This document shows, piece by piece, positions 25,280-51,854 of a stretch of DNA of 64,000 nt (position 1 is its first letter; each line of letters begins with the position of its first letter). The notes beneath the pieces were generated by a model, which was given only the letters and a program-made list of their open reading frames with translations, did no database searches and was not told the DNA's origin. The stretch is from positions 14,124,275 through 14,188,274 of the forward strand of contig NC_134032.1 of the NCBI RefSeq assembly GCF_964204645.1, read 5' to 3'. The stretch is from Tubulanus polymorphus. Its lineage: Eukaryota; Animalia; Nemertea. Position numbers and translations under genes: made by a program.

Positions 25280-26710
25280 TCAATCGGCTGGTACATCTAT
25301 TCCGCAGTCCGCGTCCTGCTGCGTCGTATCCATGGCAACCTCTTCTTCGATCGTATCGAGACTTTCACATTGTCTTTTGACGAATTTCATGGCGTCTGCC
25401 GGGACTGTTCCCTGATCAAGTTTCTGACACCATTTTTTGTACTGTTACGAATGAGATGAATAAGTTAAGAATTTAATCACTTACAATTTTTGGACGCAAA
25501 ACCATAAAACTAGATCTTTGGAGTAAATCATTTAACAAATCATTGGTCGAATGATTTCTCCAAGATAAGATACATTTTACATTACAATACTGATCCAATA
25601 ACTTTTTCGATCACATTTCACGCCTATTTATCTTAATCAAAAAGGGGATGAAATGGTTGAACTATATACTTCTAGTCGGACGCTAGAACAAGTTCAAAGC
25701 TAGAGGCTTGGATTTATCAGCTAAAACAAGTTCAAATTAACCCCAATTTGTAAGTCGATCCTGCTTCAAATACACTACGGTAGCCAATACACTAATATCT
25801 AGCTACATCTATCTGCAGTTTGTAACTGATAATGAATTTTAATCAACAACCTTTCTCGCATTTTCACCCAAAAAAAATTAGGCCTACATTTAAATACATT
25901 TGACAATTGTGCAACAATTCCAGGGGTCAGTTGCTCAAAAGTTAGGTGGACAAATACCATAGTAACAATGAAATTTCAATTGTCACTTTGTCAACTATCC
26001 ACTGGTTTTACTTTTACCAACTTTTGAGCAACTGACCTTTGGAATTGTTGCACAATTGTTAAATATATTTAAATGAAGGCCTAATTTTTTTGGGCTGAAA
26101 ATGCGAGAAAGGTTACGTTAATCAAAATTCAGATCGTTAAATACTTACCATTTCTAGTTCATTTCTCAAAGCTAGAATAGCTTTCTCACGCGTGGACACA
26201 AGATCTTCAACGTATTGATAGCGTAGTTTTTTACGGGCTCGACACTCGCGGGCCGACTGACGACTTCGCTCTAATTTCGTCTTGACGTCGATTTTAGAAG
26301 GTTTCCGCCCCCGACGACTTTTCTTCACCGGAGCACTGGCCGGGGCAGCTGTCGTAACGGGGCATGGAGCAGATTGGGCTTCCTGTGTGGAAAACAAGAA
26401 AAACTATCAACAATTTAATAAAAACATTTAATAATCCAAAAAATTCAAAAATCTTTTCCTTCTTAATCATATCAAAAGTAACCTTACAATAAGTGAAATT
26501 CAATAAGTGAAACTCTAAATACTTATATTTTTGTGAATCAGATAGTTTAAAGGATCTAAGGAACCAACTTGTCAAAATTCATGTAAACAAAAACAAATGC
26601 ACATGGGGGATAGTCCTGCTACGATCAATAACTCTATTTTTACTCACCTTCCCGGAATCGACAGTCAATTCCACGAATGCTTGTTGGTTTATTGTAATCA
26701 TCTGATCCAT
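25280..26710 (-). CDS. CREBL2: CREB-like 2 / REPTOR-BP-like small bZIP factor, ~152 aa
   Basis: Exons 26710-26648 (MDQMITINQQAFVELTVDSGK|gtgagt), 26382-26149 (RRGRKPSKIDVKTKLERSRQSARECRARKKLRYQYVEDLVSTREKAILALRNELEM), 25441-25280 (YKKWCQKLDQGTVP...); all phase 0. Confidence 0.92.
25834..26131. repeat. ~300-bp fold-back (inverted repeat) with a family-B MITE at its centre
   Basis: aacctttctcgcattttca...gcaacaattcca is mirrored by tggaattgttgc...tgaaaatgcgagaaaggtt. The central element (ggtcagttgctcaaaagtt...aacttttgagcaactgacc) also occurs at ~45929-46070, ~47999-48127 and ~19745-19812. Confidence 0.85.
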
Positions 26711-27187
26711 TTTCAGTTATTTGTAAGATTTGACTTTATTTCGATGAGGAAATATTCCAAGTTAAGAAATAGGTCTTCTTTTTTCTGTCAGTGTGTTTTG
26801 ACAATATGGTGCGCGCAAATAGTTCGTTATGTAAATAAACAAATGACGTCATTATCATGTGACGACTGACAAAGATTGTGAATAATTTGCATATAATGGA
26901 ACTTTTGTATTTTAAATGATTACATTCTCGGTAGAATCATAAAAATTTTGTATAGATTTTCATATTCATGGGGACAAAATCCATATTGATCTTCTAACTA
27001 TTTCACGAGCGTACGAATCGCAATATCGAATCACGCGACCTCGCGTATGGATTCCGTAGGAATTCCCGAATGACATCAATGGGTAATCCAGGAAGTGAAC
27101 TGGTGGCGTTCACTGGTGACAAAATGATAACTTTTTCCGCTTTTTCCACCTTTTACTGTCGATTTTCAGCCCTATAAAAGTAGCGAA
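26711..27187. promoter_or_regulatory. Bidirectional promoter CREBL2 / SARA-like gene
   Basis: 477 bp between divergent ATGs; perfect CRE ATGACGTCAT 26843-26852; ETS core CAGGAAGTG near 27090. Confidence 0.6.
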
Positions 27188-30100
27188 ATGGGAAATTGGT
27201 AAGCGTAACTCGAGGTCGAATCATTTCCGTTAAATATTCGTTTAAACTTTTCGGCGTTGAAATCAAAATTCTCAGTTTTAGGGCGTGATACTGACCCCAT
27301 CAAGTCTAATCAAAATCAAGATTTATTGTGACATTTTCAGAAAATGGAAAATCATATCATTTAATTTAACAACAATCACATAATTTCAGTTGTCCCGGTG
27401 ACAGTACCCGTGGCGATGATCAGCAGACGCTGTCTCGATATTCGGCACAGATGGCGGTCGATCCGATTGGTTCAACGACTGCCAATCAGGCTGGTGTTCA
27501 GGCGGATTCGAGTACTCAAGATCGCCCTCGGTTACGGCCTTTCTGCATCGTGAGACCTGATGACAGTATCCCTGGTAACTCATCAGTTTATCTAGTATTT
27601 ATTTGTATTTACAGGAACAGGGTTCTTACGAGTTTTTGGAAAATGGGATTTATTCAAGCAGATCCTGGAAATGCTATGTAGATTTGATTTTCCTATTATA
27701 GCTATGGAAAATCTGAAAATGGTCCCTAAATCAAATTTTCCTTCTATTTAATGACTGCATGCATATTTGTATTACAATTTTGGCTGACACTTTGTCAATG
27801 GTATTGATAGTTGGCACTTAATTACTTGGAATGGGACTGTTCTCATTGGTGATTTAGGGGTATAGAAAGTTTGTAATCTGGGTATGGAAAAGTTGTGGAA
27901 ACCTGTAAGAACCGCGCTTGAAGTTATTTTCGAGAAGAACATATTTTTGTTTCATCAACATCTGTATTGTATATTTCTAGGTAAGGTGGTCGTGGCTGAC
28001 GTTCTAGAAACTGAACAGCAAACTTCACATCTTATGCCACAAGTCGTCGGTAAATAAACATCGATATTTGAGCCACAAGTTCAGTCAGAAAATTTGGTAG
28101 ATTTTGAAAAATTTTCAAATATTTATTTTCAGACTCGGATAAAGATCCGCTAAGCGTGATGGTTCTATTCGACGGTGGGATGATACTCGTCAAAATCAAA
28201 ATCGTTTTTTGTAAGTTTTTTCTTTCACATACCCTGGGGCCGGTTCCATAGTCATGGCTTAGACTTAAGACCAGTCTAAGACTATCTTATTTCTATAGCT
28301 AATCTAACAGCTTAAGACCAGTCTTAAGATTTAAGACCAATATCGGACTTAAGTTGCGACTATGGAACCGGCCCCTGAAGATATAGCAGGAAAACCGATC
28401 GATTTAACTAACCCTGGATTGATTTCAGTGGAGTGTTGCGCTAAGACGTTAGTTTGGCGTTACTCGACGAACGGACTCGAAAAATACGGCCAACAGGAAG
28501 TCGTGTTTATAATGGAATACAACGAAAACGAGAAAACGATATCATTCGATATGTTAGAAATGTTTCAAAATATCGCCGTGCAAGCTAAACGAGGTACCGT
28601 TATATAACATCTCGATATATCATCTTCGTTATATCGATATATCGTAATATAATGTCTCAGTTAATGGCTATCGATATCTAGAGATTGAAGTTGAAAAAAC
28701 ATCTCATTTCCTGAAATGAGATATGTCGAATATCGAGATATGTGGCGAAAGATCGAGATAGTTATTGTTTCTCAGATGAGATATGAACAAGTGGAATGCA
28801 CTAGATATCTCGACCACGTCATTAGATATATCGAATTGAATTGATATTTTGGATCGATATTTTCAGGGAACACCGTTTCGAACATGGGTTTCACTCATTT
28901 CCTACCGTGTAACTTTCTAAAAAGTAATAATCATACCGGTTTCCTTTACGTCGCTCCATCCTTCCAGGTAATTCTAGTGTCTGAATTTGTAGTCTGGGGG
29001 AGCCACGTTACAGTCTAGATAAACCCGTCTGTCCCTGTTTCTATATTTCAGTGTATCAGACACCTCTTGGACGATGTCGACATTTTGAAAATTCCGTTAT
29101 TCATGATTTTGATTCATCAGATGGAGGTGCCGATGTTACGCAATATGCCAGTTCGTTTAATGACGCGTCTAGGTCACTCGGAAACCTGTAAGTGTGACTC
29201 CACCGGCATCAACCCCTGCATTCCTCATCACGTCAACCCAGGGGCGGATCCACGTGGTTTTATTAAACTCGCGTAAAACCCTAAAAAATTTTAAGTGCCC
29301 TTTTATTCAAAATCTTGTTGAAAAAAATCTGTCAACGTCAATTTCTGTAAAACTAAGGCACAATTTTTTCGAAAATGCTGGAAATATGTGAAAAGAGTGG
29401 TCAAAAAACGCTTGGATCTTTTCCCCTGGAATCCCTTAGGCGACACTATTTCAATCATACTACATTTTGAATGTATGTTTTCATCGATCTCCACTAGGTG
29501 GCATCGTTTGGGCCAGCGGGCCTAAACCTCCTGCCGATAGTCTTAATAAAAACCCAGGTATTAATCTTTATTCCTCTAGTTATTCACATTAATGTTATTA
29601 GACCTTAAATCTAATTCCTCCAGGGACCAGATGCACTGAGCCAAATTCAGCTATGACTGGTCTTAAGTTGGTTGACTGGTTATAGAACTAAGATGAGCTT
29701 AGACTGGTCTTAAGTTGTCTGTTGAACTAAGATGGTGTTAGGCTGGTCTTAAGTTTGGTAAGATGAGCTATAGAACCAAAATGAGCTTAGACTGGTCTTA
29801 AGTTGTTAGATTAGCTATAGAACTGAAATGAGTTAAGACTGGTCTTAAGTTCAGTTCTTAGATTGGTTATTTTGTAAGTTTTTGGTTATATAACCAACAA
29901 AAATGAGTTTAAACTGGTCTTAAGTTGTTACATTGGTAATAGAACTAAAAGAGCTTAGACTGATCTTAAGTTGTTAGATTGGCTATAGAACTAACATGAG
30001 CTTAGAGCGTTCTTAAGTTGTTACATTGACTATAGAACTTAAAAGCGGTGTGAATCTTAGCTATAGACCTATAGTTGGTCTTAGACTGGTCGTGCATTTG

Positions 30101-32332
30101 GTGCCTTGATTACAGTAAATGAGGGGGTTATTTTTCCGATTGCAAATTTCATTAATCAACATTTTATCCGCACATTTTAAATAATTGATGAATAAATTTT
30201 CCGTTGTTGATTCATTTCATGATTTTTGTTTTACAAGTTCTCCGATATTGCGTCGTAAGTTCTCGAATATTTCAAAGTTGATTTTCGTTGAATGATACGT
30301 ATTTTCAGGTTATCCGTGCGGCGTAGTGAATAAACGTAATCGGCCGCCGGTATTCGTAGGTGTTCCACAGAACAGTCTTCTTACTCAATTTGCAGTAAGT
30401 TTCACAAAAAGATTTTACAAACACTTTCGAAATCACTTTTCAACAATTTCGAGCAAATGATTTTTCAGCATTCGTGGTAACAAATTTGTATTTATGAAGT
30501 TCAAATCTGTCTTAAAACTTCAGAATATCAAAAACTTTGATTGAAAAATCAATTTTTTCGAAAAAGAATTGTTGGAAAATTTATGAATTTTAATCTTCAG
30601 GATTTCGAGCATTTCAAGTTCACGTTTCCACGGATCGAGAATTCACATATCATCATCAACGACGATTTGAAGGTTACCGTGACGATTCCCTACGACAAAC
30701 ACCAGCGGGTACGTACATCAATTCCCAACAGGGTTCGCAATAGATCACTGAAAATCCAGAAAAAATCTGACTCTTTCCTTGAAAAGTCGGGGAATTTTTA
30801 GCATTTAGTTGTTCTTGCTGGAGATGCTTGACACGAGGAATCTCTTGATAACAGCCCCCACTGAGGATATCTTAAAAATTTAATCATGTAATTTGAATTT
30901 TTGGTGTCTTGTTGTTCTTGCTGGTGACGAGTGACACAAGGAACCTCATGATAAGAAACAGCCCTCACTGAGGATATCTTATAATTCAATCAGCGAACTT
31001 TTGCTCAAAGTCCGGGTTCTCTGATCTGTAAGGGGGCACTGTACAGCGTTTATCAGTGGATGTTTTCTATTTTCGCGCAGGTCGGACAGATTTTAGATCA
31101 CTGGGGTTCCGGGAACGTATTCGTTATTGGGGGTGATTTCAGTTTATCGGTCGACACGTTTCTAACGGTTACGCAATCTTTAAACGGTTACCAAACGACG
31201 GGAATCACAAAATACGACAGTCAACGCTCAGGTGAACGTACAGGTAACAAAGTTGAATTTAAAAAGATTTTTTTTTTATTGATTTATATGGACCCTGTAT
31301 AATTTACCTGTATTTAACCCTCACTTATCGATGTAAACTCCGCTTTTGTATTGATTATTTCATTATCTTACCCCTTTCAGTGCGTCTACACCGCAGTGCA
31401 GTGTATTGATTTAATAAGTAATTACTAATTATCTCTCTTGAAAGATGGCAGCACCTGTCAAACATAGTGAAATATTAGTAACTAACGATACACCTCGCCG
31501 CGGTGTAGACACATTATAGTGATATACCCGTTATTCAACACACTAGGGTGGAATTTTTCAGAATTTTCAAATTATCTTCAGCACTATAGGGTATTAATTA
31601 GCCAGCACTGAAAGGGTTAGGTGAAAAATAAGATTATTATTATAATTAAGCTGATTTGTTGTAGGTATTGGTGCTAATTTTATAATATTTGCCGGAGCGT
31701 TGAAAGGAGAACCTAGCGTTAAATCAGCTCTACTCGAGGACGGAATTATGGTTATGATGAGACCGGAAATATTCCAAGATCTCGCCGAGGTAAACGCAAA
31801 AACGAATTCAAATTGTTGCTAGGCTATTTTGATAATGTTGTCCGCCATTAGTGGTAACTAGGTAACATAAATACAATGCTCGTTTAATACAATTCTAGAG
31901 AGCATCTTCTCGAGATACGAGATCCTCTGTTGTCAGTATCCTGCGTCAAAGTTTTGTCGTTTATTCCAGTTTTACTTTAAGTTTCATATCGTCTGTCATG
32001 TGGCAACTTGACAGCATCAAACTTTGCAACATTGCTACCAACAATGCCACCTTGGCAATGTTTATCATTCTGTTGTTTTTTGTTGCTAGGCGATGAGAAA
32101 TCGTAAAGGATTCACGATTCGAGCCGATGAGTTTCAGTCGCCGAGTGAAGCGTCGAACGGCGTTCATTCCGGGAAAGTGATTGAAATACAATGGGTTGAT
32201 CCGAAGCCGTATTTCGTGTCGTTGCTAGCGGCGATCGGATTGACTGTTGAACAAGTGAAAAATCGCGATCGCGCTCAATCGATAACGTTCGAGGCCGCGT
32301 CGCGATTGGCCGAACAGGGAATCGAATTCTAA
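27188..32332 (+). CDS. SARA/endofin (ZFYVE9/ZFYVE16) C-terminal-domain (DUF3480-like) protein without a FYVE domain, ~489 aa
   Basis: 12 exons with consistent phases: 27188-27198, 27390-27574, 27981-28049, 28133-28210, 28429-28593, 28867-28967, 29052-29187, 30309-30394, 30601-30708, 31081-31243, 31665-31789, 32090-32332. Collinear with the SARA C-terminus: WRYSTNGLEKYGQQEVV, GNTVSNMG, HTGFLYVAPSFQ, EVP...MPVRLMTRLG, YPC, ADFEHFKFTFP, NGYQT, GANFIIFAGALK, LLEDGIMV, IEIQWVD. Confidence 0.88.
28237..28374. mobile_element. Harbinger-like MITE family A, intact copy
   Basis: Long terminal inverted repeats gggccggttccatagtc/gactatggaaccggccc; CTG target duplication. Confidence 0.85.
29650..30090. 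repeat. Tandem array of the internal ~46-bp unit of MITE family A
   Basis: Repeating gactggtcttaagttgttagattggctatagaactaa(a/g)atgagctta; similar arrays at ~41570-41725 and ~48570-49130 in reverse orientation. Confidence 0.8.
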
Positions 32333-32478: not shown

Positions 32479-32585
<107 letters not shown>

Positions 32586-33799
32586 ATTATTATTCATATT
32601 GATATGAATATATATTTATTTACATTATATTTAGATTATAGTATTATATACTGTGCCGTCTGCACCAAATTTCCAGCCGTTCACAGTCAAATAAAGTTCT
32701 CCCCATTTCGACAGTTGTGAAATTTGACTCCTGATTGGGGGGGGGGGTTTGTTGCGATAGACTGGACCCTTGCTTTCCTACTGAGGATGCACTTTTCGTC
32801 AATACAGAGATCAAAATCTGAAAATTTGACATTCATCCTATCCTAATTTGGATGTATTTCTTCTTTACACCAACGGGCGTTCCGCCCAGGGGCCTTGCGT
32901 GACTGCTTTATCTGAGAAATGCTTTTTCTTTTCTGCACCCCGACCTTCCAATTTACCTAGAATTCTGATGAAATTGTCGAAATGAACCCGGTTGGTTATG
33001 CAGTTCTTTGTTGCGAATATTTGACTTTTCAGTTGATAAACTTTGGAAATGAACTAATTAATCTCTCAACTCGACACGATCCAAATTTTAGGAAGCATCG
33101 TAGGAACAGGTCCTGCGTCGAAGCTTTATTGCTTTTATACTGTAAGAAATTAACTATTGTGAAAATTTCTGATTAGAAATAATAACGCGTTGTATGAATT
33201 GTAAATACAAAGATTTAACCGAGCCAAAAATTATTAGGGACCACTTTAGAATGCGTCGTCTGAAAAATGATCATGTTTTTGTTACTGTAATTGTATATAT
33301 ATATATATATATATATTAATAGTTTATTGAAACTCTCTCTTTGTAAGCGGAGAGATATTTTATATGGAAGTGATTAATGTGTGAGAGATGTGATTAATTA
33401 ATTTAGACATGAAATTGTTATTTGTTAAAAGAAGAAATGAGCAAAATAAAAGATAATGTTTACGAAAAGTTTGACAAGTTTCATTTTTTGAATTAGTCTA
33501 AAATTAGGAGTTTTCAGGATTTATCCCGAATTCGTAGGAATCCAAAAAGAAGTATTTGGGGGAAATTGGCAGCATTTGGCAACACAAAAACACGATAACT
33601 GAATGAGTTTAATAAATATAAACATTTTTTGGCCCAGAGGTATTTTGGGTGGCTGCAAACGTTCAAAAACTTGAAATACTGTAAATGAATATGAAATATT
33701 ATGATACGAATCACTGCTCAAAGTTAGTTTGTTGGGACTAGAGGAATGACGTATTTTGAAAGGAGTTTATTACAGCACTGAAACCTTTGTTGAAATTGA

Positions 33800-39943: not shown

Positions 39944-51854
<11,911 letters not shown>

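Follow-up and report, generated by a model that had tools for sequence, protein, structure and literature searches.

We examined a 64-kb stretch of the genome of the palaeonemertean ribbon worm Tubulanus polymorphus (Nemertea), referred to here as the window, and in particular a gene on its forward strand at positions 27188–32332. The gene encodes a compact relative of SARA (ZFYVE9) and endofin (ZFYVE16) that begins with MGNCC and retains the core of their C-terminal domain (SARA_C). Comparison of proteins and gene structures shows it, as far as sequence can tell, to be a functional, divergent SARA/endofin paralogue that is conserved among nemerteans. The best combined explanation of our observations, to which we assign a probability of roughly 0.55, is that this paralogue carries an acylated N-terminus that would tether the SARA_C core. 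Across animals, the C-terminal domain of SARA and endofin is conserved; a solved structure exists (4BKW), and the function of the domain is poorly defined.

Gene model, domain content, and origin

The coding part of exon 1 comprises only 11 nt (ATGGGAAATTG, read as ATG GGA AAT TG; 27188–27198, with the start codon at 27188–27190) and ends at a gtaagc donor of a phase-2 intron. In forward-frame translation, no other in-frame ATG precedes this start codon as far back as the stop at 27128–27130, and its Kozak context has G at both −3 and +4. The acceptor ag at 27388–27389 precedes exon 2 (27390–27574), which completes Cys4 through the split codon TG/T, continues with the codon for Cys5, and encodes most of a poorly conserved polar N-terminal linker that extends through exon 3 (27981–28049); the resulting protein N-terminus is MGNCCPGDSTRGDD. 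Collinearity with the human ZFYVE9 structure 4BKW begins in exon 4 (28133–28210). Exon 5 (28429–28593, 165 nt) served as the query of our library search, and exon 6 (28867–28967, 101 nt) shares 55% identity with the genome's own canonical SARA. The SARA_C profile can then be followed through exon 7 (29052–29187, profile positions 7–33), exon 8 (30309–30394, positions 38–57), exon 9 (30601–30708, positions 65–98), exon 10 (31081–31243, positions 110–148), and exon 11 (31665–31789, 125 nt, positions 151–191). The match ends at IEIQWVD in exon 12 (32090–32332), which adds a private tail of 43 residues before the stop codon TAA at 32330–32332.

All 12 exons have AG/GT borders, and their joined coding sequence (CDS) of 1470 nt translates into 489 aa that match exactly the NCBI protein XP_074656422.1 (here P0001, 489 aa), named ZFYVE9-like isoform X2 in RefSeq. 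The script-made join of the window exons was used solely for this identity check. Pfam searches were run first exon by exon, yielding only weak, collinear SARA_C matches, and full-length searches used the database protein P0001. The other RefSeq isoform, X1 (XP_074656421.1, here P0009; 509 aa), is a cluster mate of P0001 and contains a 20-residue insert, GIVWASGPKPPADSLNKNPG, encoded by a 60-nt alternative cassette exon (29498–29557) in intron 7. The insert separates RLGHSETC from YPCGV, close to position 37 of the SARA_C profile. Both isoforms begin with MGNCC, which lends the junction between 27198 and 27390 and the expression of the gene indirect support.

The original prediction, made from the DNA sequence, had proposed the 11-nt first exon spliced to position 27390 and 12 in-frame exons with canonical sites. 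RefSeq contains the same model as isoform X2, so the exon list stands for that isoform, although the cassette exon had been overlooked. The gene is thus not new to annotation, although its label misleads: "zinc finger FYVE domain-containing protein 9-like" has been attached automatically to genes that encode no zinc finger. In the literature library searched, we found nothing on DUF3480, PF11979, or FYVE-less SARA proteins, and no paper describing structure 4BKW. The gene is a real, conserved, automatically annotated architectural variant of a known family for which we found no published description.

SARA_C (PF11979) is the sole Pfam family detected in P0001, spanning residues 219–451 with E = 2.5e-44 and 152 bits versus a cutoff of 25, and covering profile positions 7–228 of 353. 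Residues 75–447 align with chain positions 26–377 of 531 in PDB entry 4BKW, a structure of human ZFYVE9 that covers its C-terminal region (E = 1.8e-45). IEIQWVD occupies residues 440–446 and directly precedes the private tail. The last third of the profile has no counterpart either here or in an orthologue from Lineus longissimus (P0006, described below). In P0001, the unmatched stretch corresponds to profile positions 229–353 (human residues ~1274–1425) and to 4BKW chain positions 378–531, so that the C-terminal loss amounts to ~125 positions of the profile, or ~150 residues of the human protein. No FYVE domain appeared in the Pfam scan of P0001, and the Smad-binding domain (Pfam SARA, PF11409) was not detected at E ≤ 1 in P0001 or P0006. 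These profile and structure alignments bear out most of what had been read from the 489-aa model at the outset, namely, collinearity with SARA from about 90 residues onward (from residue 75 in the 4BKW alignment), an end about 40 residues past IEIQWVD, the lack of a FYVE domain, and the loss of the last ~100 or more residues of canonical SARA.

The N-terminal region has a very different character from this core. Residues 1–90 are 66% polar (S/T/Q/N/G/P/D/E/K/R), are acidic with a pI of 4.4, and have no family match, and exon 2 searched alone likewise returned no Pfam family. In the SARA/endofin family, an N-terminal hydrophobic helix binds HD-PTP Bro1 (PMC5501724). The polar N-terminus MGNCCPGDSTRGDD... 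contains no obvious counterpart of this helix, as judged by eye rather than by formal comparison. Overall, the protein consists of a polar N-terminal stretch of ~85 residues that is probably disordered, a SARA_C core (about residues 90–450), and the short private tail.

Exactly two loci in the 268-Mb assembly match SARA_C. The second, on contig C2 (G000:C2:19751848-19768624), matches the full profile (positions 1–353) and is preceded at a distance of ~13 kb by a FYVE exon; it is the canonical SARA of T. polymorphus, the separate full-length gene that the original prediction had asked about. The window gene is 30–55% identical per exon to this paralogue, and the two have in common the introns that follow positions ~37, ~99, and ~149 of the SARA_C profile, as well as the borders of exon 5. 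The shared introns and exon borders therefore indicate a duplication at the DNA level and not retroposition. Within the reach of such comparisons, these data show that the window gene arose by DNA-level duplication of canonical SARA and then lost both ends, and that the lost N-terminal half took in the HD-PTP motif region, the FYVE finger, and the Smad-binding domain. The initial assignment as a divergent SARA/endofin paralogue is upheld by the lack of both domains and by the presence of canonical SARA in the same genome.

We searched a library of 1.84 billion proteins with the 54-aa exon 5 sequence, a query so short that canonical SARAs of other animals fall below significance. The search recovered P0001 (100% identical over the exon), an orthologue from L. 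longissimus (Heteronemertea), and two short fragments. The orthologue, XP_064651837.1 (P0006), is also automatically named "ZFYVE9-like" and comes from a different nemertean class than Tubulanus. Its identity to P0001 is 41% overall, 47% in the core, and 18% in the first 90 residues, and it covers SARA_C profile positions 7–227 of 353, being truncated at both ends like P0001. At 41% protein identity, the synonymous sites of the two genes are saturated. Rebuilt on its locus, the Lineus gene has nine exons with canonical splice sites throughout, and all eight introns (8/8) occupy Tubulanus positions in the same phase. Exons 5, 6, and 11 are identical in length in the two nemerteans (165, 101, and 125 nt, respectively). 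The first coding exon of Lineus ends with ATG GGA TGC ATT CA followed by gtaaga, and thus contributes 14 nt from this internal ATG versus 11 nt in Tubulanus, both in phase 2. Because the architecture and the micro first exon are shared with Lineus, both must predate the split of the two nemertean classes.

Other candidates did not extend this range. P0002, P0003, P0004, and P0007 were spurious relatives (unrelated families, an automatically named collagen, Asp/Gly-rich repeats, and FG-GAP repeats), and two Logan contigs, P0008 and P0010, resemble the canonical SARA of another organism. P0005 was uninformative as an orthologue, as its contig stops directly past the exon and yielded no further exons upstream. 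Word-index searches with the whole protein, the alignment, and region 185–275 returned only the query or canonical fragments; they missed the Lineus orthologue too and are uninformative on absence. The known range is two nemertean species, from searches that are weak at reaching other phyla, and the gene may be distributed more widely in Spiralia.

The N-terminus as a candidate lipid anchor

Within the N-terminal region, where the two nemertean proteins are only 18% identical, the combination of Gly2 and a nearby Cys is all that is conserved, and we regard this as the strongest argument that it is functional. Each protein has two Cys among its first ~7 residues as candidate palmitoylation sites: Cys4 and Cys5 in that of Tubulanus and, with numbering from Met40, Cys3 and Cys7 in that of Lineus. 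Gly is at position 2 in Tubulanus and, only if Met40 is the start, in Lineus. Translation from the internal Lineus ATG would give MGCIQSC. The original prediction had suggested looking for orthologues starting with MGxCC; an orthologue does exist in Lineus, with MGCIQSC from Met40 in place of that motif. These residues would most likely constitute an acylation signal directing N-myristoylation and/or S-palmitoylation. An acylated N-terminus together with the flexible linker could anchor the SARA_C core at the cytosolic leaflet of membranes independently of phosphatidylinositol 3-phosphate (PI3P). Judging from the primary structure, we consider the odds that the N-terminus is a lipid anchor to be about even or slightly better.

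Several observations weigh against this tethered paralogue. The Tubulanus sequence MGNCCPGD fails the PROSITE pattern PS00008, defined as G-{EDRKHPFYW}-x(2)-[STAGCN]-{P}, at Pro6; the Lineus sequence MGCIQSCT passes. A maize CDPK with the N-terminus MGNCCPGS was scored as having no predicted myristoylation motif (PMC3704972). The linker is acidic (pI 4.4–4.8) and has no basic patch to aid membrane binding. In Lineus, the public model begins 39 codons ahead of MGC (L013:10001-10131, OU343010.1), which would leave the motif buried. As for the core, its AlphaFold model, built on a nine-row alignment, is poor (mean predicted local distance difference test score, pLDDT, of 50) and was used for coarse matching, and the nemertean core is only ~30% identical to vertebrate SARA, the source from which partners are extrapolated. 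The initial description of a "classic" dual-acylation motif was consequently too strong, given the failure at Pro6 and the maize result.

Some of these points can be qualified. RNF11, a SARA partner, carries a myristoyl group on Gly2 and a palmitoyl group on Cys4 despite a Lys at residue 6 (PMC7697665), and PS00008 is therefore not absolute. In Lineus, the MGC ATG lies in a strong Kozak context, with A at −3 and G at +4, and the upstream ATG in a weak one, with T at −3 and A at +4. The annotated Lineus N-terminus may be a 5′ overextension.

The main competing explanation is a soluble protein, that is, a real and conserved FYVE-less paralogue in which the N-terminus is not acylated, the SARA_C (SUFU-like) module is a free cytosolic binding unit, and the Met-Gly and Cys residues are coincidental or otherwise used. 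The failed pattern in Tubulanus, the near-identical plant N-terminus, the upstream Lineus start, and the acidic linker all fit this explanation, as does the finding that SUFU chains are the next-best structural matches of the core. SUFU is a soluble regulator. A soluble protein is harder to reconcile with Gly2 and a nearby Cys being the only conserved elements in a region of 18% identity, with their placement in a conserved micro-exon of the same intron phase in both species, and with RNF11, which is acylated although its residue 6 departs from the rule. We regard the soluble protein as a genuine contender, though a less probable one than the lipid-anchored paralogue.

A second alternative is a mis-modelled 5′ end, in which the transcript would run to distant FYVE and Smad-binding exons and encode an ordinary SARA or endofin. 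Very short first coding exons are indeed easily mispredicted. However, a profile search found no FYVE match in the 64-kb window, the nearest on the contig being ~1.8 Mb away, and all six reading frames of the window lack the signature R(R/K)HHCR, for which the canonical SARA gene served as positive control. The divergent bZIP gene begins 477 bp upstream, both RefSeq isoforms start with MGNCC, and a complete canonical SARA is present elsewhere in the genome. Lineus shares the first exon, and its 35-kb locus, including 10 kb upstream, contains no FYVE signature. An orthologue with the same first exon is a strong argument against hidden FYVE exons and also against a pseudogene. We therefore consider a mis-modelled 5′ end very improbable. 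Least credible of all is a decaying, functionless partial duplicate of SARA (an unprocessed pseudogene), which would account for truncation at both ends and for a divergence from the genome's own canonical SARA (30–55% identity per exon) far beyond that usual among canonical SARAs, but not for an intact reading frame, canonical splice sites at all 12–13 Tubulanus and nine Lineus exons, conserved exon sizes and intron phases, or a core that is 47% identical across two nemertean classes next to an N-terminal stretch that has drifted to 18%.

Flanking and intronic features

The neighbouring gene upstream is a divergently oriented, CREBL2-like bZIP gene. Its first coding exon lies on the reverse strand at 26648–26710, with the ATG at 26710, and an open frame containing its bZIP exon follows at 26137–26397 on the same strand (bZIP_2, E = 9e-6; a CREBL2-type basic region). 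The distance of 477 bp between the two ATGs had been noted originally and is confirmed. The shared region (26711–27187, 477 bp) contains a perfect cAMP response element (CRE) palindrome, TGACGTCA, at about 26845 and an adjoining second TGACG half-site. The arrangement suggests a bidirectional, possibly bZIP-regulated promoter. A further motif, TATAAAAG, lies 8 nt upstream of the ATG and would put a start site within intron 1; we rejected it as a signal because the window contains it at chance frequency (5 found versus 5.1 expected).

Two introns of the gene contain repeats. Intron 7 has two arrays of a 47-nt tandem repeat (29738–29851 and 29896–30045), and intron 4 contains, at about 28240–28375, a palindromic element of ~135 nt, ggccggttccatagtc...gactatggaaccggcc, that resembles a miniature inverted-repeat transposable element. 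The motif ttaagaccagtcttaag is common to the intron 7 arrays and the intron 4 palindrome. A (TA)n microsatellite of ~170 nt (32479–32650) starts ~150 nt past the stop codon, either inside the likely 3′ untranslated region or immediately downstream of it. Farther downstream, the forward strand contains the long first exon of a PI4KB/PIK1-like gene (39944–41017; Pfam PI4KB-PIK1_PIK, E = 1e-28). On the reverse strand, a 368-codon open frame of ~33-residue tandem repeats (43295–44401) lies in a region of strong GC/AT skew (42–46 kb) and probably represents a minisatellite, not a gene.

Proposed role and comparison with known systems

Foldseek searches with the low-confidence model returned 4BKW first (E = 1e-16), followed by a group of SUFU structures with E values from 9e-4 upward. 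ESM feature searches also pointed toward SUFU, with scores of 0.75–0.76 that are below the trust threshold. Taken as a lead, these matches indicate that the SARA_C core may adopt a SUFU-like, two-lobed, peptide-clamping fold, a possibility that concerns the whole SARA_C family and not just the nemertean proteins. At the level of the model, they also suggest that the part retained in nemerteans could be a complete SUFU-like unit and the part lost an extra C-terminal domain. Our literature searches found no link between SARA_C and SUFU.

Without a Smad-binding domain, the paralogue cannot present Smads. In the mechanism that we envisage, the SARA_C core would instead bind a membrane-located partner, either a receptor or a trafficking factor, with no involvement of PI3P or Smads, and the paralogue could either form a scaffold of its own or compete with canonical SARA. 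The architecture of the protein is established; the mechanism, and with it the originally proposed "membrane adaptor subfamily", we infer. The most specific form of the proposal, a SARA_C module that is naturally minimized, anchored by lipid, and equipped with a SUFU-like peptide clamp, is speculative, and we think it unlikely to be correct in every part. If it were true, the SARA/endofin C-terminal domain would be an autonomous unit, independent of PI3P, FYVE, and Smad binding, and the nemertean protein might regulate TGF-beta/BMP receptor traffic at the plasma membrane or Golgi.

The importance of the gene is bounded by its known range of two ribbon worms. Within that range, a natural protein that keeps the SARA_C core and has exchanged FYVE for a possible lipid anchor offers a compact handle on the function of the domain, on its partners, and on the role of membrane identity.

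As for SUFU, P0001 has no Pfam SUFU match, and the root-mean-square deviation exceeds 10 Å on a model whose mean pLDDT is 50. SH4-type dually acylated proteins, such as RNF11, Src-family kinases, and the plant CDPKs that begin with MGNCC, likewise combine Gly2, a Cys in residues 3–7, and a flexible linker. The Tubulanus protein, a candidate member of this group, differs from them in having Pro at residue 6, outside PS00008. Lineus P0006 has the same architecture, truncations, and intron positions and phases, with an MG-Cys motif that likewise ends exon 1; it differs in having nine exons instead of 12, no cassette exon in the public model, an annotated start further upstream, and an SH4-like MGCIQSC sequence. 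With SARA and endofin, finally, the nemertean protein shares a homologous C-terminal region, and its gene shares several intron positions with the canonical gene of its own genome. In contrast to these proteins of >1300 aa, it is 489 aa long, lacks FYVE, the Smad-binding domain, and the long N-terminal half, and has a 43-residue tail and an MG-x-C-C start of its own.

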